The notes under the pieces: generated by a model
What the model was told of the DNA's origin: nothing
The model's input: the letters and a program-made list of their open reading frames with translations, nothing else
The model's database searches: none
Source of the DNA: Thalia democratica
Taxonomy: Eukaryota
Length of the DNA stretch: 64,000 nucleotides
Assembly (NCBI GenBank): GCA_965202585.1
Contig: OZ241826.1
Span: 21,948,001-22,012,000, forward strand
Direction: 5' to 3'
Made by a program: the position numbers and the translations under genes
Shown: positions 31,241 to 64,000 of the stretch, piece by piece
How the letters are laid out: each line of letters starts with the position of its first letter
Position numbering within the stretch: position 1 is the stretch's first letter

Positions 31241-31702
31241 ATGAAAGTGCTAATCATCGCATGCATCCTCGCATCCTCGCTAATCCGAACCGACGGACTG
31301 TTGAAGTGCAGCAAGTGCTACGACACGCATTACTACTACTACGACTCCACCGTACGCGACGAATAAGACCGAATCGACGATTGTGAGGACGCGAAAGTCA
31401 CTGGGTGCAGGAAAGGTTACTGCATCACTTACGAGCTTGACTCGTGCGAAGGTCCTCGCTGCCACGAAAGAGACTGCGACTATCACGAGTTGTGCAAATC
31501 TGTTGGGATTGGGAGTCGAGAAATTAGACACCCGTTGTGGGAGGAAAGGGTCACCGTACATTGTTGTAAGGGCGACATGTGTAACGATCAGGAAAAATTT
31601 TCCATGAACGCTGGAGTATCAGTGAGAAGGAACAAAAACTTATATCAGAAGTGTTTGTTTTGTGTTTTTGTTTTAAAGGTTATAACAAAACTTTTTGTTT
31701 AG
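31241..31702 (+). pseudogene. LU/three-finger gene, subtype A copy 1 (A1): intronless, intact frame except one premature TAA
   Basis: MKVLIIACILASSLIRTDGLLKCSKCYDTHYYYYDSTVRDE*DRIDDCEDAKVTGCRKGYCITYELDSCEGPRCHERDCDYHELCKSVG...HCCKGDMCNDQEKF...FCVFVLKVITKLFV*. TAA at 31364-31366; all 12 LU Cys retained. Confidence 0.85.
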
Positions 31703-34700
31703 TTTTAAAAAAAATTTTTATTGTGAACTTTCGTTTTAACATAATTAATTTTCAAGATTAACAACATTTTTTAATATATTTTGGCATAGTTTTACTACAT
31801 AATTTTACTAGAGCTAGCTTTTTGTAAGATCTATAACTAAAAGTACAAAAATTGATAAATTATGGTAAAAAAAAAAACATTCATAAAAGTTTCAAAGTTT
31901 AAATAACACGATAAACCTAGCATACAAACTAAGAAAAATTTGCAAAAAAGTTTTTTTTACTGTAGGAAATTAATGTATAACATTTTGCTATTATTATTTT
32001 ATATATTGAACAAACAATTTTTTTCAAAGCTTTAAATTTTATTATTTGAAGAAATTTATTCTTAGTTCTAGCTATTTTTTATGTCAGTTTATTGAAACTA
32101 ATATATAATTTTAATAATAAGCTGTCAAGTTATAATCATTCATTTAATCTTTTTATTTTCTATAATTATAATGAATTTAAAAACCATGAAGAACTAAAAC
32201 AAACTAAACTATGTTGAAACTAAATAAAATGTTGAACTAGGTTTTACATGACTTAGATATTGCACTTTAATTTAAACTATATTTTTTAATTTTATTGGAT
32301 CGAGCTTTTGTTTTGCTTATTTTATGTAGTTTATATTTTCATTAGAAAATTTAAGACTGCGTTTATGACACAAAACTATTTTGGTATGTACTATGTGTTA
32401 TGTAAATAGTTGAACATTGAAAAAAAAAAAGATAATAACTAGTTTTATCTTAAATAGAATCATACTGAAAACACAAACTTCATCTTATTAAAAAAGCAAA
32501 AATATTAGTTAAAAACAACACTGAAAACTTCTAAGTTATTTTTTTTTATATGTTTATTTAGCTGAATATGTTTACATGTGCAAAGAGATGACTGTTCCAA
32601 GTATTTTTCTTTATTTTATCATGAATTTGCATTTAATATACTGTCAAAAACGTTTCGAACTTACCATCAAAGTAAAAATAAAATCTTTATGAATAAAGTT
32701 TAAAAAGACAGCAGTAAAATAAAAATTTAAAAAAATAAAAGCAAACATATATAGGTTACTGATCAGCTTAAAGAAGCATGTAGTTAAAAAGTTCATACAA
32801 TTAAAAACAACGATTTTAATATCATTAGATTTTGCGAGACAATTTTATGCTTGTTTTTTTAATGCTTTAATACTAGTTAAAAATAAAAATAAAAATAAAG
32901 AACATTTTGAAAATTTACTTCTTAACTTCAATCTATAAACTTGTAGTTATCTTATTATCTTATAAGTAAATAGTTATCTTACTTGGTCTAATCTGTAATA
33001 GTATAAACAAAACTTATTAATGAAATTAATAAATTATTTTTGATTGCATGTTTTATTTTTCTTAGAATTTATTAAGATAAATTTGGAAAAATTTATTCTT
33101 TATAGAAAACTTTGGCATTAAAAACCGAAATTTGTTTTAATTTACGTAAATAACCTAAACTAGTGTAGTTTTTAGATTTTCACCAATTTGTTATAATTTG
33201 TTTTCTGTTTTACTAAAATAATCTCAGAACAATTTTTTCAATGCTTTTAAAGTAGACTTTAGTATTTAATAAGTATAAAAAAGTTTTAACTTAAGATAAA
33301 TATTCTAAATTAGGTCTATTACTCAAATGTTCTAAAAGAACAAAAAATAATTAAGTTTGTTAGGAAAAGATAAAAATCTTAAATAACCTTTCATAATTTT
33401 AAACCACTATTTTTTTACATTTCGACTAATTTACTTTACGCTTAAGGCTGACCGAATGGTATCAAAACCTTTATAAAAAGTTAAATAAATAGTAAACTGT
33501 TTGAACTAATATTGAAAATTTTTGTTTATTTTGGTGTAAATATACACGGTTTTAAAAAATGCAAGCTCTTTGATTTTAGACCCTTAGTACAACTGAGATT
33601 GAAGAAGCACATTATTACAGGAAATTGTTAAATTTAGTTACTAAACAATTTATCCTTTATTTTCGAATAGTGCTATAAGCTGTAAGTAATTAAAAATTAA
33701 GATAATTTTTGACGGGGTCCTTACTCTTACAACAACGGAAATAAAAGAAATAGAGTAGTTAAGTTATTTTTTATTAAGTAAATTAATTTAGGAAAAAATC
33801 AACAAAGTTTTGCTTTAAAACTGCCTCAAAATTTGAGTTGTATGAGTGTTAAACTTTTAAAATTCTTGTTGATAAATTAATTCTTAATAAAACAAGTAAG
33901 AAAATGTGGTAACAAAAAAAAAACAAAAATAGAAAAGGTTTTAAAATTAACTATTTGCCATAACAAACACAAAAACTGTAGTTTTTAATGTAAAATTTGT
34001 TCTTTATAGCAAGAACAAAACTAACATCAAACATTACGAGAAGTTAAAACCTGTTTTATTTTAACATATATAGCTATTATCTTTAATTAAACATTTTATT
34101 ACTATTTAAAAAATAAATAAAAAATTATTAACAGTTTAGAATTTATCTTCATATGTAATTGTTGAGAAATTAAAAAAAAAGAGTTTTTTTCGCTAAGCTT
34201 ATGATAAATATTAGTTTACAATTTTTTATCATTCTTTGTTTGAAAACAAGGTTATGAGCATTTCTAAAGCACGTTAGATAAGTAGGTTTAAGTTTTTATA
34301 GCACTAAAAAGTGTATAAGATGCATCTATTTACTAAAATAATATTTGTTAAGTATATAGCTACTTTATTCTATGAATTGTGTTTTTTTGCAATCATGTTT
34401 ACTAGAAGGCCTTCAAAATTTAGTAAAATTTAGTTAGTTTTTTAACCTTTTGCACAGGAAAACATAGTCAACAGACTTATAGAAAACTGTTGATTGATGC
34501 TAAAAACAGCACCTTCAATGATTCTTTTATATTGAATTTATTGATTTATAGATAAAAAGTGTATATAAAGCATTTGTTTACTAAAATATTTTTTGATTAA
34601 AAAAAAAACTATTAAGGTTCATGAATAGGTTGCAATCACGTTTACTACCAGATGCTTAAGTTTTGTTATGCAAATTTACTTAGTTTTGTGATTTTTAGCA

Positions 34701-35045
34701 TAGCTAAACGTAGTCAACAGACTAATAGGAAACTGTTGATTGATACTAAAAACAATTAACTTTGTTATTCTCTTAAAATGCTATTAGTTTTCAGAAAAAA
34801 AAAGGCAGCAAAATAAACTAAGTAATTGATTATACTGACTTTATTCAAAATAAAAACATTACAGCTAATGTGCTTTGTTTCATTATATATTTCTGTTAGT
34901 TATTGCTATTTAGTATGACTTAAAAATTGATAAAAGTAAATAGTGAGTAGTTTATTAAAACAGTGCTTTAAGACTTAGGAGGTTTCAAAAACAATAAAAG
35001 GCAGCAAATATAAATAATAAACTAAAACATTTCACTTAGTTCAAA

Positions 35046-35393
35046 ATGAAAATGCTAATCTTTATATGTATCCTTGTTTGTTAACTAATCTGAACAGATT
35101 GATTAAGATGCAGGGAAATGCGACAGCAAACACAATTTGTGCTACAAAACAACTCAGAAAGCTCGAACGATGCTTCTGAAGACTCGAGCATCGTTCACAA
35201 CGGTGACTTTTGCATCACGTTGCAGTTTGGTTCGAGTAAAGACTACGACTATCACGAACTGTGCAAATCTGTTGAAACTGGCCAAACTAGACACCCGTCG
35301 TGGGAGGGAAAGGTTATTAAACATTGTTGTAAGGCCGATATGTGTAATGACCGAGACAATTTCTCAGTTAATACTAGTATAGCAGTTAGTTAG
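35046..35393 (+). pseudogene. LU/three-finger subtype A copy 2 (A2), decayed
   Basis: ATG 35046; three in-frame stops in the signal-peptide region (taa, tga, tga); loop II deletion and lost Cys; still shows HELCKSV..HPSWEG..HCCKADMCND. Confidence 0.88.
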
Positions 35394-36184
35394 AATAAAT
35401 AATTAAATCAGAAGTGTTCGTTTTACGTTTTTTAAAGGTTATACCAATACCGTTTGTCTGATTTTAAAAATATGTGTATTGTAAATGTTGTTACAACCAC
35501 TTCTAAACTTTCATTAAACAAAATTATAATATCTAGGATTTATATTTTTTTTTATCACATTTTATCACAATTTATACATTTTTTTTTCGTTAGGGTAGGT
35601 TTTTATAACATCAATAGCTAAAACTTACACATAAAAACTGTACTAAAATATGTCTTTTTAAAATTTTAAAAAGCAATTTTACGTCTATAGTGTTTTTACT
35701 ACTATAACATTTTATGAACTAACTAAAAATTTGTTTTTTTAAGAATTAGTTGTTTTAGAATTGTAGTCAAAACTAGATGTCCACAGTCTTAAAAATTAAA
35801 GGCAAACTTTAATAAAAAGATAATTGTAGGCCTCATTTACTTACAAGAAAAAAATTTAGTAAATAAATGATTCTCATTTTAATACAAAACAAAACGAACT
35901 GTTTAAGTAATTTTAGTTTTAAAATTTTAATAAATATAGATAAAAAAATTAACATTTCTTAATACTTTAGAAGATAAATTAGTTCTGTTTAATAAGATTT
36001 TTTAAGTTTTACCCAAAGCAAAAATAAAACAATTTAACAAAGCAATAGGAAACTAATCGTTTGTGACTATAACAACTAGCTTGTTCTCCGAATAGTGCTA
36101 TTAGCAATAAGAGAATAGAAGTAAAAAGGAGCGAAGACTAATAGAAAACCGTTTAGAACAACCTAAATTTTATTTCCATTCAAA

Positions 36185-36628
36185 ATGAAGGTGCTACTAT
36201 CTGTATTCACATTAGTTTTTTTGATAAACGCAAAAGAAGGGCTAAGATGCCGAAAATGCAACGACGCTAATCATTTCTATGATATAGAAACTTGTGACGA
36301 AACTAACAATAAGACCGCTCGGTGGTGCGGCAGCAGTTATAAATTCTGTGTAACTTACATGTTTGAATGCGAAACAGATTCTGGCTGTTATGAAAAAGAC
36401 TGCGATTACTTCCACTTGTGTAAGTCTGTTGGAACTTTTAAAACTTCGCACCCATTTTTGTCTAAGAACATCACAGTTAGCTGTTGTCGTGGTGATATGT
36501 GCAATGACCTGAAGGAAGAAATTTTGCTCGTAAGCGCTGGTAAATCAGTAGGTTTTAAAAACATATCAAATCACATTCGTGCATATTATGTTGTGTTTCC
36601 AGTGGTTGTAGCATTACTGTTTGCTTAA
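36185..36628 (+). CDS. Ly6/uPAR (three-finger) protein, subtype B copy 1 (B1), 147 aa, predicted GPI-anchored, intronless
   Basis: Signal peptide; 12 Cys ending in CCRGDMCN; small-residue site (SAG), spacer and hydrophobic C-terminus YYVVFPVVVALLFA with no cytosolic tail. Confidence 0.93.
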   Translation: MKVLLSVFTLVFLINAKEGLRCRKCNDANHFYDIETCDETNNKTARWCGSSYKFCVTYMFECETDSGCYEKDCDYFHLCKSVGTFKTSHPFLSKNITVSCCRGDMCNDLKEEILLVSAGKSVGFKNISNHIRAYYVVFPVVVALLFA

Positions 36629-38228
36629 GTTTACTTTGTTATGTTTTCATTATGTGTTAAGACCAGTTACAAACAATTAATTTTATACTTAATAAAGATT
36701 TAATAACAATTAAAAGCAGCCTTGTTTTACTATATGTTTTTTACGCTTTTACGATAGATTTTTTGATAGCCTTCCTTAGGACTAAAACGAATAGTTTTTC
36801 GCTTAGGCTGCCCATTTTAGCTGTTTACTTAAAGTTTAGTTAGATTTTTTAGAATATAATTGATAATAAATGTATCAGTGTGTTTAGCGTATAATTACAT
36901 AAAGTAGCTATGGTCGTTTAAATATAATAAACTATAAGTTTATTATCGCTAACGTTTATTATCATGAAACTAAAACTAAATAAACTGTCATAATCAATAT
37001 CAAAATATAACCAAGTTTTTTAGTATAGCTTTAATATTATTTTTTCTCCATATTTAACAAAGTTTTCTACATTTATTTTTGCCATCATAATAATTGTCAA
37101 TTGCTTCCGTTCGCACTTAAATGTTTTATTAGATAGTTTCAAAATCGTCTTGCAATCGAAATTTAATGAATTTTTTATATTTTAAAAAGCTTTTCTAATT
37201 GTGGGCTGAGTAAAAAAATTAAACGTTTTAATAAACCAGTAGGTCAGAAAAAAACAATATTTTAGAATTAAAACTATTTCACACACTAACATGCAAATTT
37301 GTTTAAAGTTTTGATAATTTCTAGTAAAGAAATTTATCTTACTATTCCTATTTTCTATTTCGCTTCATTTTTTTAACTTAAATAGAAATATAAGAATAAA
37401 TTTTCAAGTTATCTTTATTCGTATAGTTGCATTCTATATTTAAAGTAATATAACTTTTAAGGTGAACTAAGAATAATTATATGCTAATTTAGTTTTACAT
37501 GTCTTTGAGATGGTTTTTAATAATCACTAGTATTATGAAACTTATGGACATTAACATTTGTTTTAGCTTATTTAATTGAATTTTAATTATAAAAAGTTTG
37601 AGTTTATGTTTATAATAGAAAACTATTTGTATATTTGAAGAAAAAATAACAGAACACTTTTTGTTTTAAAATAATAACAATAAAAACAGCTATACTTTCT
37701 TTTTTTCAAACTAGCAACAATACTAATTAAAAATATTTGTACAATGGAACAGTTGTTATACAATACTGTTATTTTTGAATGTTTTATGTAAGTTTATTTT
37801 AGTTGCATACTTTATGTTTTAATGAAAGTTAAACTTTTTTAAATTTTATTGAATATTTAAACTAGTATTTATTTTTAAATTTGTTGAATTACGACCATAT
37901 AGTGTAGAGGTCCTAATGACTGCTTTAAAAACTGTTTAAGTAAAACGTTGAAAGAACTTAACACCTTACCAATGCATTTAAAATAAAACTTCCATTCTGT
38001 TTTTTTAGTTGTTTAGTTTATTTGACTCAATATGTTAAGTATTGTAAGAGTATTAGCACTTTAAGTATGTTCCCTTTTTTTGTTTAACAACTTGTGTTCA
38101 ATTATGTTGTCAAAAAACAGTTTAAGCTCACTAAATATTTTTAATAAACCAAAATTCCATTTGTATATAGTTAAAATAAAAAATACAAAATAACAAACTT
38201 ACATAGTACATTTTTTATTAAACTAACA

Positions 38229-38300
38229 TATGTTTTTGTTTGTTAGTACTCTCGTATCTTTACGCAATTTTTCTGTGGACACAATGTGCGTAATTACGCG
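38229..38300. mobile_element. Small Tc1/pogo-like TIR remnant at a deletion breakpoint
   Basis: Imperfect inverted repeats (tctcg..tacgca / tgcgta..cgaga). The right end reads TACAGTAACCTCTCGCGTAATTACGCA on the minus strand (TA + CAGT start typical of Tc1/mariner/pogo ends). It is absent from the paralogous block. Confidence 0.45.
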
Positions 38301-40475
38301 AGAGGTTACTGTATATTACAAAATTCTGAAAATTGAGTTGTTAAAAATGTTCTAAAAAGCAAATTTGTTCATTTTAACATACATATCGATATATGCCTTT
38401 CTATAAACAGTTATAGTCCTTCAGTTTCAGATTACTAAAAAAAAAAATTTAAGGAACATCGAGTATTGGTTCACGATAATTCAAACACTGCTTTTTTATT
38501 GATACTGCAATAGTATCTTTTAATATTTCAAACAAAATTTCTGTACGACCGTAATATTTATTAAATTGACATTCTTGTACAATTTTACTATTTTTGTTGT
38601 TTAATTATGTTCACAACGAGCGCACTCAAAACATTTAAAGTTTAAAATTTCTAGCAATTTAGTAAACGTTTCGTCAAAAATTCATTTCAATAATACATAA
38701 TTGAATTTTTTCATAAATAATAATATTAGACAACCTTAACTTTACAAACTCTTACTATAAATAAAGAACTATTTTCGATAAAAATAATAACTAATAAAAA
38801 AAAATAATTGTCTATAAATACTTACTACTTTTAATAATTTTTTGTTAAACTCGACTTTTAAAAAAATAAATATTTAGTTGTAAGTATTAGAATGCTTCAT
38901 TTAATACTTTTTTTTTTACAATTTTTTTAGTTCTGTATAAATCAAAAGTTTTGAATAAGGCTTAGTAGAAGAAAACATTTTATTTATATTTTTAAACTTA
39001 AACTTTAGAAGCTTAATCTTCGTTAAATCATGTAAAAAATAAAAAATCTAAATTTAACTAAAAAGTTATTATAAAAAAAGTTGATTTTATTTATACAAAA
39101 AAAAAATAGCCGAAATATTTGTTATTTTAATCATCTAATATTTTCCTAGTATTAATTAAGTAAGTATGTGACCAATAACTTTCGAAGAAACAACTAACTA
39201 CAAATACGTAGAAGGAAAATTTTAAGTTTAAAATCTAGTTGTTGTAAACATAGAACATAATTTATTGACTATTCTTACGTTTTTTATATAACTTTGTAAT
39301 CTAAAACAACAAAAAAATGCAACTTGAATATTTACTGCGCATCAAGGCTAAAAACTAATTCTGGCATTTTGTTTTACGAAACTTTTATAAACAATTTAGA
39401 TTAAAAAGTTAAATATATTAGATACTAAAAAATATTATCAAAATTCACTGTTTAAAATTAAGTTCGTATAATAAGAAAAGAATATTAGGTTTTCAATTTT
39501 AGGTTTATAGTCAGTTTATGATAAAAAGAACAGTGTTTTGTTGCTGTAAAGTATTATTTATAAAAATACATAATCTGATTATTTATTAATGTCTAAATCT
39601 ATTCGCTCAAACCATAACAAAAAAGTAATGTTCAAAACTCATAAAATAAACATTAGTTGACAACGAATGATTTAATTAGTTAAAAGTCATGAAAATAGGT
39701 TTATTTTCAAACTATTAACAGGTAAATAAATGAGCTAAACATTTCAGGTGTAACTTTTTAATTCAAGTGTTTATAAAATATTTATTATTAACAATACACT
39801 TTAAGATATGATGTTTTGTTCTAACTTTAACGTTCTGCATTAATGGTACTATTAAAAATGTATTACAAGATTCATTAAAAATACAATTTATATTCTTTAT
39901 TTTGCAGCTAAAAATACTTCAGTATTAAATATAAAATTTAAGTATAATGAAAAACGTAGGTGTTAAATACTACTTCTATTACTATAACAAAATTAAACTA
40001 CAATAATATTTTTTAATTAAGTTTAGCTCAACAAAAAATGTTAAAATGAAAATGAACGTCTTGACGAAAACGTAAGTAAACTGTGTTAAGGTTGTACTTA
40101 TAAAATATTGAAAGAAAACTTCTATAATACGGTTGAATTTATTGTTTTTTAATGAATCAAATTAGAACAACAATACTAACATGTAGAAATTTGATAGAGA
40201 AATAAAGTCTAAGTGTCGTGTTGCTTAAAATCATGCTTTATTTTGAAAACCTAAAAAAATTTAAACATCAAAACTAATAACATACTCGCAGATATTTTAA
40301 AAATTATGATAAACGTTTTAAAGATGTTTAGACCAATATATGGTAAGAATTGTAAGGATTGAATATTAAATTTTTTCCATGGTTAAGCCCGTTGTCAAAT
40401 ACAATAAACTAGTAATTGTAATAAATATTAATCAATACCATAGTCATATTTTTATTTTATAAACATTTTCCGTAA

Positions 40476-41259
40476 CTAAAAAATAATATCTAATTTACAA
40501 TAAAATATGAAAGTTAGAAGCACGAAACTCTGACCCGACACATTGTTTCCACCTGAAGACGGAAGGTTCTCATCGTTGCACAGGTCGCCCCGGCAGCAAT
40601 CCACCAAGTAGTCGTCGCCTTGAAAATCCCACTTGCTCTTTCCTTCCCGCTCGCAAAAATCGAACCAGTCGCATCCTTTCTGATACAAATCAAGCGGACG
40701 TTCTTCGCCGTCAACAAACTGCTGGTACGTGATGCAGATGTTTGCGTCGCATGTGGCAATGCTGCTTTCGTCCCCGTAGTAATCGTAACCGTAATCTACC
40801 TGAGTATATAATTTACATTTATGTTATAAAATGTAGAACTTAAAAAAGTTCTTCGAAAAAAGTTTGAATCGTTTAAGCCGTTTTCATCTTGTAAAACTTT
40901 CAATACAAAATTCCTATTCAAGTATGTATAAAAAATCATTTTACTTTTAAACTTTTTAAAAATAACTGTATAACTCAAAGCATAATATCAAAATATATTC
41001 AACAGTGAGCACACCTGTAAGCTTATAATAAACCTGAATGCTTTTATATAATTCAATTTTTATGAAAACCTTAAAGCAGAAACTAAAAAATAGTGATCAG
41101 TAAAATAATGAAAACTTAAACTAATAGAAAAAAAAATGAAATAAAAACTAAAATACAGATCACCTGTTTGTGCAGCTGATCAAAGTATGAGTGGCATTGC
41201 AAGCCAGCAGCCAGGTTTAACAGGCAAGTTAAAGCAAAGGGAAACGTAAAAGCCTTCAT
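40476..41259 (-). CDS. Ly6/uPAR protein, subtype M copy 1 (M1), 139 aa, 8-Cys LU, two exons, GPI-like tail
   Basis: Exon 1 41259-41164 (MKAFTFPFALTCLLNLAAGLQCHSYFDQLHKQ; donor gtgatc). Exon 2 40799-40476 (VDYGYDYYGDESSIATCDANICITYQQFVDGEERPLDLYQKGCDWFDFCEREGKSKWDFQGDDYLVDCCRGDLCNDENLPSSGGNNVSGQSFVLLTFIFYCKLDIIF*; acceptor actcag). Phase-0 intron. Confidence 0.87.
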
Positions 41260-43149
41260 CGTCAGTATAAATTACCAGCATCAACGAATACACTTGAGTT
41301 TATTTGCCTTATTATCTTTATAATATCTACCACACATTTATTTCTTCAGAAATGAGAAAAGCGGTTGTTCTTGCAGTTTATTTAAACTGCGTGTAAATTA
41401 GGTCAGTTCTGGCAAATTTTAAATTTGATATATTTATACTGTGAAAATAAAGTAGTAAAGAAATTTTTTAGGTACACTATATTAAAAAAAATCAACTACT
41501 GCAAAATAAACGTTTGAAAGTTTGTTAAAAAATATCATAAAATAATTTTCGTAGTTTAAATAAAATTCTATGCTTTTCGTGTTGTATTACAAATATTTTT
41601 TAATGTTTATGCAGTTTTTCAATGGTCTATCTAAATAAAAATTTAAACATGTTTAGGTATTCAACATGGTATAAAAAAATATTTATTATTCTGCAAGAAG
41701 AATAATAAATATCTAAGTAAATAATAAATATCACTAAACAATAAAATTTATTAAAATTTAAATGTTGAAGTTTGAGTTGTCAGAATTTTATTTTCATCCG
41801 CCTAGTCAAATTTCAGTAAAAAGTAAAATCTGAGGAGTTTTGTTTCAACGCTCGACGAAGTCTATTATCAGTTGTTGATGCAATTTAAGTTAATTGTTTT
41901 GAGTTTATTTGTAAACTTAGATAAACATAAACATTTAAATTTATAATCTTAAAAAAAGATTAAATAAAGTTTAGTAGTTAAAATTGTTAAAATAAATTTT
42001 GATAAAAATAAATCCCATAAAAAAAAACTTTTAACAAAAACTCTTTTTAGAACTTCACAACTTAAACAAATTCTATTTACTATAAATAATTAGGTTGAGT
42101 AAGCAGACAAACGTTTCCGATTAATTGTAAAATAAGGCTTTTATAAACACTTACGTGTATAAACATCTATTATTTGAAACTAAAATAAACTAAAAGTATC
42201 CTACTTACAATCTTCAAAAAAACTTTAATTGTGCAGTAAATTAAACTTTAATTAAATTAATTTTAATAAAATCAATTTAATTATTAATAAAATTTTAAAA
42301 AAGTAAAAAAAAAAATAATAAAATTATTTAATAAACTTTTTAATTAAAAAATAAATAAAAATGATTAATTTCGAGCACAATTTATTTTCAATATTTTACT
42401 GCTTAGAGTTTTTTTTTTTGTTTAAGCACTTTACAACTAAAAGAGATAATTTCGACGAGTTTATATGACGAATGTTTCCGAAAACGTTTGTGTATGACTT
42501 GCTTATTGTACTTATTTTAAACTAACTATAAAACTTTCGGTAAATAAATGTGAACACTTAATTGATATTATTTAAATACGTAACTAAAAGTAAAGAAATT
42601 TTTTTTTAAAAAGAAAACAAACAAACAGTTAAAAATAAAATTTTGTATTTTTGTAATGTTGTTGATATTATTTTTTTTTACAAAGTCTTTAAGTGAATTA
42701 AAAACATACATATTTGTCACTGTAATTTGTATAAGATTAGACAACTGTACATCAAATTGATAAAAGGATGTATAAAAAATGATAAATTTCAATTTGATTT
42801 AAAATTAACTAAATATAAGGCCGTGGAGAATATGTTAAAATTTACACATAGTTACATCACATTATATTTGACAAATAAAGCAATATTATTAATTGTATTC
42901 ATGTTCTATTGACTATTAGAACTAATCTTTTTTCGGAACTGATTAGACTATATATTATTTTTTTGCATTATCTTTAAAAAAAAAATAATTTATTTTTTAA
43001 TGTTGGTCCAAGGTGAAGTTTGAAATACAATTAGTAACTCATTTAATTTTTTTTCTAACCATAATCTAAAAGTTGTAGACATAATTTAATATTTGCTTTA
43101 AATTAACGTTTGATTATAACTATAAAATGTTAAACAAAGTTTATTTAGT

Positions 43150-52090: not shown

Positions 52091-52462
52091 ATGAAAGTGC
52101 TAATCATTACATGCTTCTTTGCTTGTTCACTAATCCGAACTGATAGATTAAGAATGAGACGACAAACATAATTTCTGCTACAAAAACATAAGTAGAAAGC
52201 TCGTACGATGCTTGTGAAAACTCAAGCATGTACACGACGGTGTAGGCATGATCTTTGCATCACATTCCAGTTTGACACGTCTGACTGCTATAAAATAGAC
52301 TGCGATTAGCATGAGCTGTGTGAGTCTGTTGGAACTGACCAAATTAAACACCCATTGTGGGAAGGAAAGGTTACTATACATTATTGTAAGGGCGATATGT
52401 GTAATGACCGGGAAAAATTCTCAGTAAATACTGGTATATTAGTAAATTGTAAACAAAATTAA
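52091..52462 (+). pseudogene. LU/three-finger subtype A copy 4 (A4), heavily decayed
   Basis: MKVLIITCFFACSLIRTDRLRMRRQT* (deletion and frameshift at the first CxxC); remnants HPLWEGKVTIHYCKGDMCNDREKF in another frame. Confidence 0.85.
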
Positions 52463-53239
52463 ATCAAAAGAGTTAGTTTTACGTTTTTTAAAGGTTATTA
52501 CAATGCTGTTTGTCTGATTTTACAAAAATGTGTATTGTAAATGTTGCTAAAACCACTTCTAAAATTTTAAAAGATAATTATACAATTTTCTAAGATAAAC
52601 ATCTATTTTTTTATTTTAGCACATTTTATACATTTTTTTACATTAGGGTAGGTTTTTATATGACCAATAGCTAAAACATACAAATAAAAACTATACTAAA
52701 ACTTGTCTTTCTAGAATTTTAAAAAGCAATTTTATGCCTAGAGTGTTTTTACTACTATAATATTTCAAGAATTAACTATAAATTTGTTTTTTTTTAAATA
52801 GTTGTTTTAGAATTGTAGTCAAAACTAGAAGTCCGCAGTCTTTAAAATTAAAGACGAACTTTAATTAAAAGATAATTGTAGGCCTCATTTACTTACAAGA
52901 AAAAATTGTAGTCAATAAATTATTATCATTTTAATACAAAACAATACGAACTGCTTAGGTTTCTGTATCTTACAATTTTTAATAAATATAGATTAAAAAA
53001 ATTAACACTTCTTAACATTTTAGAAAATAAATTAGTTTCTGTTTAAAAAGACTTTTTTAAGTTTTACCAAAATCAAATATAAAGTAAATCAACAAAGCAA
53101 TAGGAAAGTAATAGTTTGTGACTAAAACAATTGGCTTGTTCTCCGAATAGTGCTGTTAGAAACAAGAGACTTGAAGTAAAAGGCACTGAAAACAAGTAGA
53201 GAACCGTTTAGAACAATATAAACTTCATTTCCATTCAAA

Positions 53240-53686
53240 ATGAAGGTGATACTGTTTGTATTTACATTAGTTTTTTTCATAAACGCATCAGAGGGGCTAG
53301 AATGCCGAAAATGCAACGACGATAATCATTTCTATGACGTAGAAACTTGTGAAGAGACTAACAATAAGACAACACGGTGGTGCGGTAGCAGTTATAAATT
53401 CTGTGTAACTTACAAGTCTGAATCATGCAGATCAGGTCCTTCTTGCTACGAAAAAGACTGCGATTACTTTCACTTGTGTAAGTCTGTTGGAACTTTTAAA
53501 ACTTCGCACCCATTTTTGTCGAAGAACATCACAGTTAGCTGTTGTAGAGGTGATATGTGTAATGACTTGAAGGAAGAAATTTTGCTTGTAAGCGCTGGTA
53601 AATCAGTAGGTTTTAATAACATATCAAATCACATTCGTGCATATTATGTTATGTTTTCAGTGGTTGTAGCATTACTGTTTGCTTAA
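53240..53686 (+). CDS. Ly6/uPAR protein, subtype B copy 3 (B3), 148 aa, predicted GPI-anchored, intronless
   Basis: Signal peptide; 12 Cys; CCRGDMCN; hydrophobic tail YYVMFSVVVALLFA. Confidence 0.93.
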   Translation: MKVILFVFTLVFFINASEGLECRKCNDDNHFYDVETCEETNNKTTRWCGSSYKFCVTYKSESCRSGPSCYEKDCDYFHLCKSVGTFKTSHPFLSKNITVSCCRGDMCNDLKEEILLVSAGKSVGFNNISNHIRAYYVMFSVVVALLFA

Positions 53687-56600
53687 GTTTACTTTGCTAT
53701 GTTTTCATTATGTGTTAAGACCAGTTTCAAACTGTTAATTTTATACTTAATAAAGATTTAATAACAATTAAAAGCAGCCTTGTTTTACTATATGTTTTTT
53801 ACGCTTTTACGATAGATTTTTTGATAGCCTTCCTTAGGACTAAAACGAACAGTTTTTCGCTTAGGCTGCCCGTTTTAGCTGTTTACTTAAAGTTTAGTTA
53901 GATTTTCTTGAATACAATTGATAATAAATGTAGCAGTGTGTAAAGCGTACAATTACATAAAGTAGCTATGGTCGTTTAAATATAACTAAACTATAAGTTT
54001 ATTATCGCTAACGTTTATTATCATGAAACTAAAACTAAATAAACTGTCATAATCAATATCAAAATATAACAAAGTTTTTTAGTATAGCTTTAATATTATT
54101 TTTTCTCCATATTTAACAAAGTTTTCTACATTTATTTTTGCCATCATAATAATTGTCAATTGCTTCCGTTCGCACTTAAATGTTTTATTAGATAGTTTCA
54201 AAATCGTCTTGCAATCGAAATTTAATGAATTTTTTATATTTTAAAAAGCTTTTCTAATTGTGAGCTGAGTAAAAAAATTAAACGTTTTAATAAACCAGTA
54301 GGTCAGAAAAAAACAATATTTTAGAATTAAAACTATTTCACACACTAACATGCAATTTTGTTCAATATTTTAAAAATTTCTTACAAAGAAATTTATCTTA
54401 TTATTCCTATTTTCTATTTCGTTTCATTTTTTTAGCTTAAATAGAAATATAAGAATAAACTTTCAAGTTATCTTTATTCGTATAGTTGCATTCTATATTT
54501 AAAGTAATATAACTTTTAAGGTGAACTACGAATAATTATATGCTAATTTAGTTTTACATGTCTTTGAGATGGTACTTAATAATCACTAGTATTATGAAAC
54601 TTCTGGACATTAACATTTATTTTAGCTTATTTAGTTGAATTTTAATTTTAAAAAGTTTGAGTTTATGTTTATAATAGAAAACTACTTTTGTATGTATAAA
54701 GCTTAAAATTATTGTATATTTGAAGAAAAAATAACAGAACACTTTTTATCTTAAAATAATAACAATAAAAACAGCTATACTTTCTTTTTTTCAAACTAGC
54801 AACAATACTAATTAAAAATATTTTGTACAATGGAATAGTTGTTATATAATACTGTTATTTTTGAAAGTTTTATGTAAGTTTATTTTAGTTGCATACTTTA
54901 TGTTTAAATGAAAGTTAAACTTTTTTAAATTTTATTGAATATTTAAACTATTAATTACTTTTAAATTTGTTGAATTACGACCATATAGCGTAGAGGTCCT
55001 AATGACTGCTTTAAAAACTGTTTAAGTAAAACGTTGAAAGAACTTAATACCTTACCAATGCATTTAAAATAAAACAACCATTCTGTTTTTTTAGTTGTTT
55101 AGTTTATTTGACTCAATATGTTAAGTATTGTAAGAGTATTAGCACTTTAAGTATGTTCCCTTTTTTTGTTTAACAACTTGTGTTCAATTATGTTGTCAAA
55201 AAACAGTTTAAGCTCACTAAATGTTTTTAATAAACCAAAATTCCATTTGTATATAGTTAAAATAAAAAATACAAAATAACAAACATACAAAGTACATTTT
55301 TTATTAAACTAACATATGTTTTTGTTTGTACACAAGTTAACAAACTTCAAAAGTGTTATAAAATTTGAAGAAATAACAATAAACAAAAAGTTTTTTTTTT
55401 TTAATTTTAATAGCTCTATTGAGGTTTATAAAATTATAACGCAAAGAAACAAAGATAGTTAGTTTAATAAAGATAGAGTACTGTGTAAATCAGTTAATAT
55501 AACTTTTCGTGAGCTTTTTTCGCTAGGATCTCTACTTAAAACGATATACTCCCAAATTAGAACAGTTAAAAGAAAAAACATTATAAAAAATTGAATTAAA
55601 ACAATAAAACATATTTACATTACTGATAAAGCATAATAAAACATGCAGTATAATGTAACTTTAATTAAGTATTATACTTTTATTTAATTTCAAGAACGGC
55701 GTTTTTTAGAATGAAAATAAAGTTATTGTTAAATAAAAAATTCTTTTCAACCTGCTTTAAGTAATAGTTGTTAACCTTCAACAAACTTAATTTAGTTTAG
55801 TACCAAAACAACTTTTGAGGTAATGAATAAGTGCGTTTTCTGTTTTAATATATAAAGCTTTGTCACTAATGTTTGGTTTTAAAAATAATATTTAATTTTT
55901 TTTCAATTAACTGTGCATAATTTAATTCAAGACCTTTTGCAATTTATTTGTCTTTTTTTTGATCAAGTCAATAAACTTATTAAACTTTTTTATTTATAAG
56001 TCAATAGTGTTATTAAATATAAGTTAAACATATTATAAAAATCTACTTTACTTATAACTACGGTCACAACAAAATTATTTAAGTTTTTAATTTTTTCATT
56101 GTAAACTATTTACATTATTCTTAAATAAAAAAAGCAGATACCATTTTTTTATCAAAATATGATAAATTTAGTCTATATTCTTTTTAATTCAATAAAAAAT
56201 AAGAGTCTTAGATTTTATTAAACTGTTTAATAGTATTTATTAGCAATTTATTTATTATAATATTTTTAAACTTTTGTATTTATTTACGGAATGCTGCAGT
56301 ATGTATAGCGTAAAATATCCTGAATAAACTTTTTATAACTAGAATATAAATATTTGATTTGTTTTTCATGTGTTTATGGTTTTGTATTTATTTTCATTTT
56401 GTACGTTGTCTTTATTAATGTAAATTTTTGATATTGAAACTATTATAATTATTATTAATTAAGTTTATTTTTTGAAATAGAATATTTCTAAAACCATTTA
56501 AAACTTAACCAATTGAACTATTTTAAAATTAAAATGATTAAAATGGACTTATTGAAAAATTAACCGGACTTTTTTCTCATTCGCTATAATTAAGCTATTT

Positions 56601-59600
56601 ATAGTCGCTATTAAGTGTTTATAACATTTTAGTAATTAAGTTTCAACAAAGTTTCTTTTAGTTATCATGTTTTGTATTTAGGCTTTGGTCCTTAAAATCC
56701 AACAACCTTTAAATAAATTAAAGCAACTATAATCTATTTTCATTGACTCAACAACATAAAACTTTGAAATTACTTTAAAAGGAACATCAAATTTATATGT
56801 AAGTGTGAAGTAAAATAACATGACTTGATTTTCAATAAGTAGTTAAATGTTTCAACATATTGCTATTTAAATATTTCGATTTATTAGTTTCACAAAGTTA
56901 GTCAACTAACAATGATTAATTGTTGTAAGAAAAGTTACTACAAATTTTGAAACGAGCTTAAATAATATTTTTGTTATCTTTTCGTAATTTTATTAAAAAA
57001 GATTTTATTTTGCTTTAGGATGAGAAATTTACCAAACACGTTTCCTTCATAACTTTACTAGTTAAATTTGTTAAAAACAAATTCATTAAAAATTATAGTT
57101 TGTATAGTTGTGAGAATAACATAATGTAATTAAAAAGTCTAATAGTAACAAAAAATATATATACGATAAGTTTTTAGTCTTAAATTAAAAGTCGTTGAGG
57201 AAACTGTTCTTAACTATCGCGAGAACAAATTCATTAAAAAAAATAATTCTTCTAAAACTAAAGAGTATTAATTAGCTAAAATATTAATCTTTATGAAAAA
57301 TTCATTACCAAACTCTATTATAATTAAAGAAGTTATAAAGAAATAAATTAAATATAAAAAACAAATCGGAATATATTACTTTTTTATCTTAAACTGTTGA
57401 ATATATATATATTTTTTCATTTATGTCCTGTTTAAACGGCTCAAATTTTGAAGCCTGAGTCCAACATTGCGTAATAAACTGACCTTTAAGTTTACTAGCC
57501 CCTTGAGCAGAAAGTTGAAAAATCATATAATGTTTCTAAGCCAGCAGATTGCGTGTGCACAATCATAATACCCTGATCCTAAAAGTTTGCATTGTTCGAA
57601 GCTGTGAGTAATATTAGCCAATAGATGCAATCGCAGACACCAAAACCTTTTATGTAAAAAAGGAAGAAAATAGGTGCATTTTTTAACATTTTAAATCTGT
57701 CTAATTTTTTTAACTTTAAACAAAGTTTTTTTTTCTTTGAATAAACAGTCTATTACATTCTTTAAAATTCAATTTATAAGAAACAGTAAAAATTTAAATT
57801 GTTAACAAGCTAAAAAGAAAAATTATTTATTAAAAATGTTTTAAATTTGTAAATTTAAGTAGTTTAAGTTCACTTTTAACTGGAAACTTTTATACTAAAA
57901 TACTTAAGATAATAACACTTTTTACGAATGTTAAGTCATATTATAAGTATCTTAATAAAATTCTATAAACAGTATATGATTTGTAAAAACAATTTTTCTG
58001 GCTTACAACTTAAAAAAAAGTTATATCGTGAGTTTTTAAATTATAACACGTTTTGTTAAAATAATACACACTTGGTGTTAAGTTTTTTTTTGACTAACTA
58101 CAGATACAGTTCTCTTGCAACTTTTGTTGCTGAGATAAACATTTATTTAAAGATATTATTAAAAGGTATATATTTAAGAATTAGAGAAATTAAAAGATAA
58201 TTCACCTGTTTCTGTGCAAATTGCATCAACTATCGAAAAAAAAAATTAGTGAAGAACTTCAAGCTTAATTTAAATTTTTATGGTGAAAGTATTAAAACAT
58301 TAAGCTGATTAAAAAGTAACACGAAAATTGAATTACGTTAAACAATCATTATTGCTGATTATGATGATGATACTGACAGCTACTTATGTGCTAACTTCAT
58401 CAAGTGTCAAACAAAGAAAAAAAATAGTGAAGTATTAAATTTATGAAGAATTCAAGCTGAACTTTTTTTTCTAGGTAAAAGTAGTGAAAATAATTATAGA
58501 CTATTAAAGAGTAACAAAAATGTTTTGTCATATAACATAATCAAATTGTTCATAGTTACTGTTTATTTTACAAAATTCTGAAAATTGAATTGTTAAAAAT
58601 GCTCTTAAAAACAAACCTATTCATTTCAATATACCTTTCGATATATGATTTTCTTTGAACAATTATTGTCTTTCAATTTCAATTTCAGTATACTAATAAA
58701 AATAGTTTTAAAGGAACATCGTGTATTGGTCCACGATAATTCAAACACTTATTTTTTATGGATACTGCCATAGTCTCTTTTATTATTTAAAACAAAATTA
58801 CTTTACGACCATAATATTTATTAAAATGACATTCTTGTACTACTTTACAATATTTTGTTGTTTAGTTATTTTCTTGATGAGCGTACTCAAAACATTTAAA
58901 GTTTAAACTTTCTAGCAATTGAGTAAACGTTTCATCTAAAATTCATTACAATATTTAATTATTTAAAATTAGTTAAAATCTTACTATAAATCAAGTAGTT
59001 TTTTCGATATAAATTATAACTAATAACAAAAAAAAAAAAGTCTAAAACTAGTTACAGTTTTAAATAATTTTTTAAACAACGAATTTTTAGGAAAATAATA
59101 CTTATTTAGAAATCTTATAATGTTTCATTGAATACTTGTTTTATTTTTTTTTTTGCAATTTTTTTTTAGTTCTATGTATATCAAAAGTTCTGAATAAGGT
59201 TAAGTATAAAAAAGTATTCAACCACATTAAAAATAAAAAACTTTTTACTATTATTTTTTAATTTAGACTTTAAATGCTAAATCGTTGTTAAAAGACTAGT
59301 AACCTAAATTTAACTTAAAAGTTATTATAAAAATAGGTGTTTTTTTAATTAAACAATTAAAATAGCGGAAATATTTGTCTTTTTAATTAGCCAATATTTT
59401 CCTAGTGTTAATTAAGTAAGTATGTGACCAATCAGTTTTAAAGAAACAATCATTTACAACTACGTAGAAGGAAAAATTAAAATTTCAATACTAGTTGTTG
59501 TAAGCATAAAACATAATTTATTAACTATTCTTACATTTTTTATATAACTTAAACAAAAAAAATTCAGTTTTACTTTTTACTGCGCATCTAGGCTAAAAAA

Positions 59601-60669
59601 ATAATTCTAGTATTTTTATGTTTCGGAAATTTTATAAAAAATTTAGATTAAAAAGTTAAATATATTAGATACTTAAAAATATTGTCAAAATCCACTGTTT
59701 AGTATTGGGTTCGTAAAATAAGAAATGGTTATAAAAAAAAAGGTGAACAATTTTAGGTTTATAGTCAGTTTATGATAAAAACAAGTGTTTTGTTGCTGTA
59801 ATGTATTATTTATTAATGTTTAAATCTATACGCTCAAACCATAACAAATTTTTTTGTTCAACTAAACATTAGTTAACAACAAATGATTTAATTTAATTAA
59901 CTAAAAGTCATATAAATAGTTTTATTTTTTAAACATTAACAACTAAATACACAAGCTAAATATTTTAGGTGTAACCTTTTAATTCAAGTGTTTATAAAAT
60001 ATTTATTACTAACAATGCACTTTAAGATAAAATGTTTTGTTCTAAGTTAAACGTTCTGAATTAATAGAACAATAAAAAATGAATTACAAGATTCATTAAA
60101 AATTCAATTTGTAGTATTTTTTTTTTTGCAACTAAAAACTTAAAGTATCAATCAGAAAATTTTATTATAGTGAAAAACATAGGTGTTAAATGTTATTTTT
60201 ATTACTATAAAAAATTAATATTATAACAAAATTTAACTACAACGATATTTTTGGTTAAATCATAAAATGTTAAAATAAAAATGAATATCTTAATGAAAAC
60301 GTTAGTAAACTGTGTTAACGTTGTACTTATGAATTATTTAATGAAAGTTTCTATAAACATGGTTAAATTTATTGTTTTTTAATAAATCAAAACAGAAACA
60401 ACAGTTTTAACGTGTAGAAATTTAAAGGAGAAATAAAGTCTAAGTGTTGTGTTACTTAAACTTATACTTTATTTTAAAAACCTAAAAAAATTTAACATCA
60501 AAGCTTGTAACTTTTATCATACACATACTCGCAGTGACTTTATAAATGATGATAAATATTTTAAAGATTTTTAAATCAATATATGGCAAGCATTTTAAAG
60601 ATTAAATATTAAATGTTTTCAATGGTTAAACCCGTTGTCAAATACAAAAATTAATAGTTGTGATAAGTA

Positions 60670-61520
60670 TTATTGTTTTCCACAGTCATACTTATACTTA
60701 ATTAGAATTTTCCGAAACGAAAACAAATTATCTAGTTTAAAATAAAATATGAAACTAAAAAGCAAAGCACTAATCACGAAAATCTGACCCGACAAATTTT
60801 TCCCACCTAAAGACGGAAGGTTCTCCTCGTTGCACAGATCGCCCCGGCAGCAATCCATCAAGTAGTCGTCGCCTTGAAAATCCAAGTTGCTCTTTCCTTC
60901 CTGCTCGCAAAAATCGAACCAGTCGCACCCTTTCTGATACAGTCCAAGGGGGAGTTTATCGCCGTCAACAAACTGTTGGTAAGTGATGCAGAAGTTTGCG
61001 TCGCACGTGGCGATGCTGCTTTCGTCGCCGTAATAATTGTAACCGTAATCCACCTGAGGGGAAATTCACATTTATGATATAAAGTAATAAGGTTTATAAC
61101 TTTAGAAAAGTTTATTCGAAAAATGTTTGAAATGTTTAAGCCGTTTTCGTCCGAATAAAACCTTCAGTATAAAATTCCTATTCAAGTGTGTATAAAAATC
61201 GTTTTACTTTAAACTTTTTCTTTATGTAACTATATAACTCATAGCATAATATAAAAGTGTATCCAACACTGAGCACACCTGTGAGCTAAAATTAAACCTG
61301 TGTGCTTTTATACAATATATTTTTTTGAAAACTTCAAAGCATTAACTAAAATGTAGTCAACAGAAAAATAAAAACAGATTAAACTATTAGAAAAAGTAAA
61401 AATAAAAACTAAAATACAGTTAACCTGTTTGTGCAGCTGATCAAAGAATGAGAGGCATTCCTAGCCAGAAGCAATGTTTAGCAGGCAAGTTAAAGCAAAC
61501 GTGCACGCCAAAGCCTTCAT
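60670..61520 (-). pseudogene. LU subtype M copy 2 (M2): two exons, one premature TAG in exon 1
   Basis: Exon 1 61520-61425: MKALACTFALTCLLNIASG*ECLSFFDQLHKQ (TAG 61463-61461 where M1 has TTG). Exon 2 61053-60670 is fully open with all its Cys (VDYGYNYYGDESS...CCRGDLCNEE...). Confidence 0.82.
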
Positions 61521-63399
61521 TGTTAGTATAAATTACCAGCATCAACGAGTACAGTTGAGTTTACTGCCTTTTTCTCTTTATAGTATCTAACACACATTTA
61601 TTTCTTAAAAAAAAGCGGTTGTTCTTGCAGTTTATTCAAACTGTGTGTAAATTAGGTCAGTCCTGACTTTTTTTAAATGTAATAAATTAGTACTGTGATA
61701 ATAAAATATTAAAGAATTTTTTAGGTATGCTATAGTATAAAAAGTTCAACTACTGCAAAATAAACGTTTGAAACTTTTCTTAAAAAATATAACTAGTAAT
61801 TTTCCTAGTTTAAATAAAAGTTTATGTGTTTTCATGTTGTATCATAGAGTATTTTTTTAATTTTTATGCAGTTTTTCAATGGTCTATATCAATAAAAATC
61901 TAAAAACATTCAAATATTTAACACCGTAAAAAAAAGTTAAAACTTTGGTAGAAGAAAAATTTCATAGTTGAGATAAAATCCTACTTTAATTGCACTTAAG
62001 GTATTTAATCGTTTTCTTAAATATAATTTCATCTTGTTTTTATATATAAATATATAGGCTTAACTTTGCAATAATAAAGTTTATAAGCGTTTATAAAGAT
62101 CTTAAAAATACTAAGTAAATAATAAGTAACATAAAACATTAAAATTTATTAAAAATTAAATGTTGAGTTTGAGTTGTCGGAATTTTATTTTCATATGCCT
62201 AGATAATTTTCAGTAAAAAGTTAAATTTAAGGAGTTTTGTTTTAACGCTTGACGAAGTGTATTACTAGTTGTTGGTGCAATTTTAGTAAATTGATTCGAG
62301 TTTGCAAACTTAAAAAAACATATACAATTATTTTAATATTCAAAATCATTAAAACAAGTTTTTAGAAAAATAAATATCAAACATTCTTTACAAAACCTTT
62401 TAACAACTTCTTCCTTAGAACTTTGCAATATAAAAATATATAATTTACGATGAATAGTTAGGTTAAGTTAGTAAACAAACGTTTCCGATTGTTTGTAAAA
62501 CAAGGCTATTATTAACACTGTTACGTGTATAAAAGTCTATATTTGAAATAAAATAAACTAAAAGTATCCTACTTACAATCTTCAAAAAAACTTTAATTGT
62601 GCAGTAAATTAAACTTTAATAAAATTATTTTAATTTTATTTTCGAGCATATTTTACTTTTTAATATTTTGATTCTTAAAATTTTTTTGTTTAAGCACTTT
62701 ACAACTAATAGAAATAATTTTGACGAGTTAATATGACAAATGTTTCCAGAAATGTTTGTATATGACTTGATTATTGTACTTATTTCAAATTAACTATAAA
62801 ACTTTCTGTAAAAAAATGTGTTAACTTACTTATTGGCATATAAATATATAACTCAAAGTTGTATAATTAAAAAAAAAAACAAAATGTTAAAAACTAAATT
62901 AAGATATTTTTGCAATGTTGTTGATATTATTTTTTTTACAAAATCTTTAAGTGAAATAAAACATCTATAACTATATTTTTCACTATAGCTTGTTTAAGAT
63001 TAGACAGCTGTACACCAAATTGATTAAAGGATTTATAAAAAATGATAAATTTTGAGTTGATTTAAAATTAACTACATCTAAAAAATACAATATAAAAGTT
63101 TACACATGTTACATCACATTATATTTGACAAATAAAGCATTATTATTGAATATATTTATGTTCTTTAGAATATTAGAAGTAATCCTATTTTCAAAACTGA
63201 TCAGGCTATATATATACTTTTTTGCATTATCTAAAGAAAAATGATTTTTTTTAAACGTTGGTTTAGTGCGAAGTTTTAAATACAATTAGTAATTTATTTT
63301 ACATTATTTAACCATAATTTAAAAGTTGTAAACATAATTTAATATTTGCTTTAAATTAACGTTTGAATATAACAATAAAATGTTGAACAAAGTTTATTT

Positions 63400-63960
63400 A
63401 GTAAATAAAAACTACCATGTAAACCTTCTTTTAACAAGTTTCTCAAACAGTGACGTAACAAAAAGTACACCACAACAACCAGCTTCATTCGTACTAAATT
63501 GTTTCGCCGCTGATTCATTAATTTTCAAGTGCTTCCAAATATCCGTCTTTTTGCGGCAATTTTTAAAAGCAGCGCAAAGCAGCTTAACATCAGCATCAAC
63601 TTGAACGTTACCATAATTAATATAAGGATAATTGTATAAGGTAAAAATACTGGTGTTTTTAGTTGAATTTCATAAACAAATCAAAGTTTACAACGACTTA
63701 AAACTTATTTCGTTCATTGCTTCAAGTTTTAGTATTGCAAAGCATAAAGGTAATCTTCAAGTTGATGCTGATGTTTAGCTGCTTTGCGCTGCTTTTAAAA
63801 TTTGCCGTAAAAAACGGACACGTAGGATTACTTGAGTAAAATTAATTCAGTGGTGAATATATTTAGTAAGGATGAAACTGGTTATTGTGATGTGCTAATA
63901 AACACGTCATAATGTGAGATAACACTTAAAAAACAAGGAATAGAAGATAATATATTAACA
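63400..63960. repeat. Inverted duplication IR2 (arms about 63400-63612 and 63749-63960), paralogue of IR1
   Basis: The reverse complement of 63541-63612 (ggtaacgttcaagttgatgctgatgttaagctgctttgcgctgcttttaaaaattgccgc..) matches 63749-63820 (ggtaatcttcaagttgatgctgatgtttagctgctttgcgctgcttttaaaatttgccgt..). Confidence 0.87.
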
Positions 63961-64000
63961 TCTGTGAAGTTGAAGTTTGAAAATCATATTAAATAGTTTT

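Follow-up and report, generated by a model that had tools for sequence, protein, structure and literature searches.

A tandem array of Ly6/uPAR-type three-finger genes in Thalia democratica, probably shaped by birth-and-death evolution

We analyzed a stretch of 64,000 nucleotides of Thalia democratica, referred to below as the window, for the tandem genes of the Ly6/uPAR (LU, three-finger) superfamily that it carries. The window spans positions 21948001-22012000 of the forward strand of contig OZ241826.1, within an 801.8-Mb animal assembly of 1833 contigs (GCA_965202585.1). It is AT-rich, with a GC content of 21-30% in 2-kb bins, and contains no N. In a six-frame scan, the motif CC[RK][GAS]D[ML]CN occurred at exactly nine sites between 31241 and 64000 (with YC in place of CC in A4) and at none between 1 and 31240. 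A translated (tblastn-type) search with one of the predicted proteins, B3, returned the same nine places. These are nine homologous LU copies: three intact B genes (B1-B3), four broken A genes (A1-A4), one intact M gene (M1) and one broken M gene (M2). An initial annotation, made from the letters of the DNA, had proposed at least nine three-finger genes in tandem, and the motif scan, the B3 search and a self-BLAST of the window all agree with it. Its tally of three intact B genes, four disabled A genes and two M genes was also correct, except that M2 is disabled as well. The nine copies are arranged as follows.

31241..31702, + strand: A1, an A1-type LU gene with one in-frame TAA at codon 42, otherwise open
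35046..35461, + strand: A2, an A2-type pseudogene with three signal-peptide stops, breaks in the frame and missing cysteines
36185..36628, + strand: B1, an intact single-exon LU gene with an open reading frame (ORF) of 147 aa and 12 cysteines
40476..40799, - strand: M1 exon 2, with the LU domain, hydrophobic tail and stop codon (40799-40479 without the stop codon)
41164..41259, - strand: M1 exon 1, with the signal peptide and first strand, followed by a 364-nt GT..AG intron
46333..46774, + strand: A3, an A2-type pseudogene with a TAA and a 1-nt deletion
47509..47946, + strand: B2, an intact LU gene with an open ORF of 145 aa and an extra cysteine after the second one
52091..52517, + strand: A4, an A2-type pseudogene that has lost 8 nt, carries a TAG within the core motif (CD*HELC) and has YC in place of CC
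53240..53686, + strand: B3, an intact LU gene with an open ORF of 148 aa, whose protein was used for the structure model
60670..61053, - strand: M2 exon 2, open
61425..61520, - strand: M2 exon 1, with a TAG at codon 20 that disables M2 in this assembly

The array continues on both sides of the window. An assembly-wide search, together with the flanks, recovered 17 copies over ~104 kb of chromosome, seven of them intact (U1, A6, B1-B4 and M1) and ten broken. The cluster is therefore about twice what the initial annotation, which had its nine in-window copies right, could see. Upstream, on the minus strand, lie the intact U1 (150 aa) and U2, which is fragmentary and has breaks in its frame. Downstream, the order is A5psi, Bpsi, A6, A7psi, B4 and M3psi. 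A6 (153 aa) and B4 are intact; Bpsi carries a deletion that shifts the frame and takes out two core cysteines, and M3psi carries three stops. The gene order A1-A2-B1-M1 is repeated as A6-A7-B4-M3, ~38 kb further on.

A third set of A1-type, A2-type, B and M copies, together with the flank of an immunoglobulin-superfamily gene, lies on C108:65844-102428 and C1609. C108 is a 102-kb unplaced contig, colinear with window positions 5000-38241 at 86-94% identity, and C1609 continues it. On C108, the A1-type copy lacks the stop found in A1 but has lost 18 nt and with them a core cysteine, and the signal peptide of the B copy (cB) is frameshifted by 1 nt in a T run. This B copy is a mosaic, with an N-terminal half as in B4/B1 and a finger II tip as in B3.

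At 25% GC, stop codons make up ~0.088 of random codons, and a 148-codon frame would stay open by chance with a probability of ~1e-6. The B frames are open in three copies, or four with B4, across up to 16% nucleotide divergence, and so cannot be ascribed to chance. All 12 cysteines and the NKT sequon are kept in the four B proteins, and the NIT sequon is present in B1, B3 and B4 and lost in B2.

The A copies have the same ATG context as the B copies, TTCAAAATGA, and the colinearity of the two extends across the entire gene; A and B are therefore paralogues. This colinearity and the duplicated blocks described below bear out the proposal of a local common ancestry followed by tandem amplification. 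A1 is 93% identical to the intact A6, its paralogue just outside the window, and is one nonsense codon away from intactness. In comparisons of A1 with A6 and with cA1, third-position differences are in excess, which indicates, on codon positions, that A1 was under constraint until recently.

The A2-type copies have a different history. A 4-nt deletion that destroys the tail frame is present in A2, A3 and A4 and occurs in neither A1 nor the B copies, so the A2-type lineage was without an anchor signal, or dead, before the blocks multiplied. Pairs of A2-type copies differ equally at codon positions 1, 2 and 3 (for example 0.16, 0.21 and 0.20), as expected for copies in neutral drift. The same three signal-peptide stops occur in A2 and A7, and two of them in cA2; the unit was therefore copied after the death of A2. 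In addition to these inherited lesions, A1, A3, A4, M2 and Bpsi each carry lesions private to one copy.

The M copies are minus-strand genes of two exons with a GT..AG intron between them; M1 is open across both exons and encodes 139 aa. A foldback of ~500 bp is located ~2 kb upstream of each M gene, at 43219-43724 and 63464-63896. Its arms measure 53-70 nt and are 77-90% complementary, and its copies are confined to the LU cluster and C1609. We considered a dispersed miniature inverted-repeat transposable element (MITE) mediating the duplications, and rejected it since the foldback occurs in no other place.

The assignment of these proteins to the LU superfamily was approached through sequence profiles, cysteine patterns and predicted structure. 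Searched singly against Pfam, the proteins gave only sub-threshold matches (UPAR_LY6, CD59 and Toxin_TOLIP). The best match of a B protein was UPAR_LY6_2 at 13.6 bits, and exon 2 of M2 reached 20.2 bits against UPAR_LY6, for which the cut-off is 24.8. The QVR family (PF17064) gave no match in the same search of single proteins, and a homologous-protein search with B3 alone gave none either. Whereas the single proteins remained below threshold in the profile search that the initial annotation had suggested, a family profile and the paralogues elsewhere in the genome gave significant matches. At least 34 places in the genome lie above the curated cut-off of PF00021, and several of them are also matched by B3. 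When 1.84 billion representative proteins were searched with a profile of the cluster, 63 relatives were recovered. Compared with solved structures, a 70-sequence profile matched CD59 (2e-11), LYPD6 (8e-11), LYPD6B (3e-9) and SLURP1 (8.5e-7), with further matches to C4.4A, GPIHBP1 and PSCA. A scan of metagenome contigs with the family alignment yielded six weak loci only, of no use.

Consistent with these matches, the ten canonical cysteines are invariant or nearly so in the alignments and align with those of CD59, and the domain ends in CC[RK]GD[ML]CN. The B, A and U types have 12 cysteines, two of them extra in finger II, and the M type has only the eight core cysteines, without the finger I pair. 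The AlphaFold2 model of B3 improved from a predicted local distance difference test score of 65.8 to 75.6 with a deeper alignment, with values of 81-93 in the LU core. In the Foldseek comparison of this model with the PDB, the top 50 were all three-finger proteins. An exhaustive VIA search placed three-finger proteins at ranks 1-39 (Z 7.5-3.9); further down, the hits were unrelated folds with Z <= 2.9. The Swiss-Prot models that match the B3 model over its full length are those of Ly6D, Ly6E, PSCA and qvr, and a language-model search was in agreement. Membership of the LU superfamily, as originally proposed, is supported by the profile search, the PF00021-positive paralogues and the structure-model matches, the fold itself being that of a predicted model.

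All intact proteins have a hydrophobic N-terminus and, after a polar spacer, a hydrophobic tail of 14-16 residues with no cytoplasmic extension. Mean Kyte-Doolittle values of 1.3-2.6 mark the first 17 and the last 16 residues as hydrophobic, and SAG and NNIS segments lie upstream of the tail. A glycosylphosphatidylinositol (GPI) anchor would be the natural reading of a signal peptide combined with such a tail. It is highly improbable that the products are instead secreted, toxin-like or antimicrobial three-finger peptides that are not anchored in the membrane. The fold is common to snake toxins, and toxin structures match the model with a TM score of up to 0.75 (toxin-normalised); furthermore, the common ancestor of the A2-type copies, without a tail frame, may have been secreted. 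However, the hydrophobic tail is present in every intact copy, the full-length structural matches are to the GPI-anchored Ly6D, Ly6E, PSCA and qvr, and all A2-type copies are dead.

Self-BLAST resolved a nested set of duplicated blocks in the window, 71-88% identical to one another. The A+B(+M) organization described by the initial annotation is apparent in three of them, two with an M gene (II and IV) and one without (III).

30411..31849, + strand: block I (A1 only), 71% identical to 51240-52684 and 88.5% to w68741-69996 beyond the window
34635..43834, + strand: block II (A2, B1, M1), matching block IV at 88% identity in its A+B portion and ~80% in its M portion
45901..50610, + strand: block III (A3, B2; no M), the most diverged block
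51240..64000, + strand: block IV (A4, B3, M2), which runs off the window end

A 3.2-kb segment of block IV (55330-58550) is also found in other blocks and is missing from block II. A transposon insertion into block IV was rejected as the origin of this difference, since the other blocks have the segment; block II has suffered a deletion. Within the segment of block IV, ~57371-57479 (~100 bp) corresponds to a dispersed repeat, resembling a short interspersed nuclear element (SINE) or a MITE. A first look gave more than 1000 candidates for it, on all large contigs.

The ages of the duplications were compared by path distances at the B locus, including 400-nt flanks and measured from B1. The distances were 0.028 for B4, 0.038 for cB, 0.10 for B3, 0.18 for Bpsi and 0.29 for B2, and this spread implies duplications of several ages. 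In its resolved part, which groups A2, A7 and cA2, the A tree is congruent with the B locus; A3, A4 and A5 branch in an order that it does not resolve.

Within the youngest tier, units I+II, VI+VII and C108/C1609 are nearly equidistant, at 0.03-0.05 for the A2-type and B loci and ~0.1 for the A1-type locus, so part of this tier is perhaps allelic. The single-copy flank differs from C108 by ~6-11%, and from this difference C108 is probably a strongly diverged haplotig of one of the youngest units. Together with the colinearity of C108 and C1609 with the window and an assembly in 1833 contigs, this near-equidistance speaks for an assembly artefact, in which some copies would be uncollapsed diverged haplotypes, placed in tandem or left as contigs. 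We consider this explanation for part of the copy number unlikely. Three versions cannot all be alleles in one diploid, and at least one recent duplication is therefore real. Judged by their sequence, the in-window blocks cannot be haplotypes, because they are 10-29% apart at the B locus and differ in content and lesions, with block III lacking M and block II carrying the 3.2-kb deletion. Uncollapsed haplotypes, which the initial annotation had named as a finding that would overturn it, thus do not fit the in-window blocks, and the youngest tier is less certain in this respect.

The relationships of the array to outside sequences were examined in a protein tree, in which the outside sequences were anonymous metagenome contigs clustered at 50% identity. 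B1-B4 were monophyletic, with a support of 98 in the Shimodaira-Hasegawa approximate likelihood-ratio test (SH-aLRT) and no outside sequence within the group. Their sister is P0001, a marine-metagenome protein that is 47% identical to B3 over the full length and is the nearest outside relative. It follows that the B copies arose only once their lineage had separated from the closest relative sampled, in line with a lineage-specific expansion rather than one-to-one orthologues. The two groups (U1,(A1,A6)) and (P0001,(B2,(B3,(B1,B4)))) form one clade (SH-aLRT 92), whose sister is a separate metagenome expansion, P0002-P0011; M is placed elsewhere, on a long branch. The only relatives of the A/B/U subfamily that were found came from short marine plankton metagenome contigs, such as those of Tara Oceans (PRJEB4352).

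Finger I of A1/A6, of M1/M2 and of the metagenome relatives P0001-P0006 is rich in Tyr, Asp and Glu and variable in length. We presume a resemblance of this composition to tyrosine-sulfation sites. As a separate observation, one DNA run labelled as marine metagenome has a few words in common with the locus. A search for cellulose synthase (PF03552) gave no match, a result that says little when obtained at the level of exons.

With regard to selection, both the B pairs and the A1-type pairs show an excess of third-position differences. The pairwise ratio of nonsynonymous to synonymous substitution rates (dN/dS) among B1-B4 is 0.33-0.59, and by this measure the B copies are under purifying selection. 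Between B1 and B4 the coding sequence differs by 3.4% and the surrounding block by ~9.5%, and between B1 and B2 by 15.9% and ~20.5%; divergence is thus lower in the coding part. We also calculated dN/dS by region, in pairs drawn from only four to five sequences. Finger II gave 0.25-0.47, with dN up to 0.22 and dS up to 0.72. Finger I gave 0.22-0.81, apart from B2 versus B3 (1.0) and B2 versus B4 (2.0), which rest on one or two synonymous changes. Finger III plus the motif gave 0-0.11 among B1, B3 and B4. No region is consistently at dN/dS >= 1, such values being confined to scattered small-sample pairs. In these comparisons constraint is uneven: finger III and the head are conserved, and the tips of fingers I and II are looser.

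These data also bear on whether the whole array is a decaying relic with no functional copy, which we regard as most improbable. Ten of the 17 copies are broken, and no RNA run is found among the sequencing runs that match the locus. Against this, four B ORFs stay open over up to 16% divergence at dN/dS values of 0.33-0.59, with finger III nearly invariant; the 12 cysteines and NKT are kept in B, and NIT in B1, B3 and B4. Additionally, a relative 47% identical over the full length is retained in another species. The open frames, the purifying selection, the conserved cysteines and sequons, the GT..AG intron of M and the start context are indirect signs that the intact genes may be functional.

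The initial annotation had gone further and suggested, from rapid copy turnover and hypervariable loops, a recognition system under conflict, whether in immunity, allorecognition or gamete recognition. In such a system, diversifying selection would act on the finger tips, and gene content would be specific to haplotypes. The annotation's argument from the loops was not supported, since finger II has a dN/dS of 0.25-0.47 with dS equally raised, and the coding sequence diverges less than its flanks. The ratio is below 1 in every region in most pairs, and LU families are tandemly expanded in many animals without such a role (PMC4839075, PMC13719153). The copy turnover is indeed rapid, and amino-acid changes are concentrated in fingers I and II, with finger III nearly invariant among B1, B3 and B4. 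A second version of the region exists in C108 and C1609, 4-10% diverged, with different lesions and a mosaic B, and the plankton-metagenome relatives have length-variable, Tyr/Asp-rich first fingers. On balance, we find a system of this kind very unlikely. A more specific version would make the array, with C108 and C1609, a polymorphic self/non-self or gamete-recognition locus, in which haplotypes differ in their live copies, gene conversion shuffles finger II tips, and an acidic, Tyr-rich and perhaps tyrosine-sulfated finger I gives specificity. This version appears very doubtful. Between C108 and the chromosome, the B coding sequence differs by ~4-5% and the flanks by ~6-11%, so there is no excess in the coding sequence if C108 is the other haplotype.

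Taken together, we consider it probable that the stretch is part of a lineage-specific tandem LU array evolving by birth and death. The birth-and-death part of the original claim is well matched by the state of the copies: ten of 17 are broken, lesions are both independent and inherited, dead copies evolve neutrally and live ones are constrained. The ancestral cassette would have carried one gene each of type A and type B, plus a two-exon gene of type M in the opposite orientation. This cassette may have been copied repeatedly through segmental duplication or unequal crossing-over, at ages of ~0.03-0.29 in B-locus distance, with purifying selection keeping the B copies open. The A2-type gene would have lost its C-terminal frame before the block duplications and then drifted neutrally as a passenger. 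The A1-type and M-type genes each retain one intact member (A6 and M1), and their other copies would have died recently, through single nonsense codons (A1 and M2) or several lesions (M3).

At the protein level, the N-terminal signal peptide would direct the intact products into the endoplasmic reticulum. There, the C-terminal hydrophobic tail may be exchanged for a GPI anchor at a small residue, in SAG or at the NNIS segment, and N-glycans may be attached at NKT and NIT. The disulfide-locked three-finger domain would be displayed on the outer membrane leaflet, where, like Lynx1, quiver, CD59 and GPIHBP1, it could act as a modulator or accessory by binding a putative partner in the membrane or outside the cell. 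Finger III and the head would provide the conserved face of such a domain, with the tips of fingers I and II less constrained.

Several points weigh against this interpretation. The sequencing runs that match the locus are of the DNA type only, with no RNA run among them. The GPI anchor is putative and read from inspection of the termini, and the B sequences, taken singly, fall below the curated Pfam cut-offs. Part of the youngest tier could be allelic or assembly redundancy and not true copies. Furthermore, the mosaic B on C108 hints at gene conversion, and hence at a process that may not be purely birth and death.

Tandem LU arrays are known from other animals. The mammalian Ly6 loci (the Ly6a subfamily on mouse chr15; human 8q24 and 19q13) contain tandem, lineage-specific duplicates and pseudogenes (PMC4839075, PMC9574348). 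The genes described here resemble them in their tandem arrangement and in encoding small proteins that combine a signal peptide, one LU domain and a GPI signal (putative in our case). However, mammalian Ly6 genes are multi-exon, whereas the B, A and U types are single-exon genes and M genes are split into two exons. They differ further in the 12 cysteines of B, A and U, with the extra finger II pair, and the eight of M. Identity is only ~20%, and no orthology is implied. CD59, LYPD6 and SLURP1, the best profile matches, have the same ten canonical cysteine positions and the CCxxDxCN end. Unlike them, the array proteins have a finger I that is longer, acidic and rich in Tyr, and their finger II holds an extra candidate disulfide; nothing points to a complement or Wnt function.

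The Drosophila Ly6 proteins, such as quiver/sleepless, boudin and coiled, are GPI-anchored and accessory to channels or junctions. They likewise represent an invertebrate expansion of single-LU proteins, partly clustered, and qvr models match the B3 model over its full length; with PF17064 giving no match, however, the array proteins show no specific QVR affinity. Snake three-finger toxin arrays also evolve by tandem birth and death (PMC10421932) and have the same fold, predicted in our case. The toxins have lost the GPI signal and are secreted in venom, whereas the intact array genes keep the hydrophobic tail. LU genes average ~30-100 per genome in many phyla, according to a survey of annotated proteomes with the lancelet as its only chordate (Paramonov et al. 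2026, PMC13719153). The at least 34 PF00021-positive places, together with the LU cluster, fall within the normal range of the surveyed invertebrate repertoires. Our literature search turned up no description of a comparable LU cluster in tunicates or plankton.

Mammals, fish, insects and snakes are already known to have tandem LU clusters that gain and lose members in a lineage-specific way, and the array introduces no new kind of biology; the birth and decay of its genes are real, but such a pattern is usual in the LU family. Particular to it are the one-exon structure, the 12-cysteine variant, the acidic Tyr-rich finger I and relatives found, so far, only in plankton metagenomes. It offers a well-resolved example of birth and death in a poorly studied marine animal, with dated duplication tiers, a passenger pseudogene lineage and intact copies kept by selection. 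It also defines an A/B/U subfamily with metagenome relatives that standard Pfam thresholds miss, which helps in annotating both this genome and plankton metagenomes.

Other genes occupy the remainder of the window. On the plus strand, 1700-23210 holds exons of an immunoglobulin-superfamily, adhesion-type gene, with domain types read from translations only, and on the minus strand, 28427-29185 holds a small candidate gene with two exons.

~1710-1853, 2504-2713, 7213-7398, 13939-14112 and 16043-16204, + strand: Ig-like exons of the adhesion-type gene
16819-17085, + strand: FN3-like exon of the same gene
18823-19008, + strand: transmembrane exon of the same gene
22965-23210, + strand: acidic cytoplasmic exon of the same gene
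29185-28934, - strand: first listed exon of the candidate gene, with a signal peptide and a Cys-rich segment
28615-28427, - strand: second exon of the candidate gene, with a transmembrane stretch and a basic tail

Inside the neighbouring gene, at 22167-22669, ~180 bp are locally duplicated in tandem at 84% identity. Elsewhere in the assembly, other tandem LU groups are located at C9:38.93-39.48 Mb, C4:76.76-76.83 Mb, C6:16.10-16.19 Mb and C7:45.33-45.45 Mb. The C9 group contains at least six ORFs of 147 aa, and the C4 group contains six PF00021-positive ORFs in ~70 kb.

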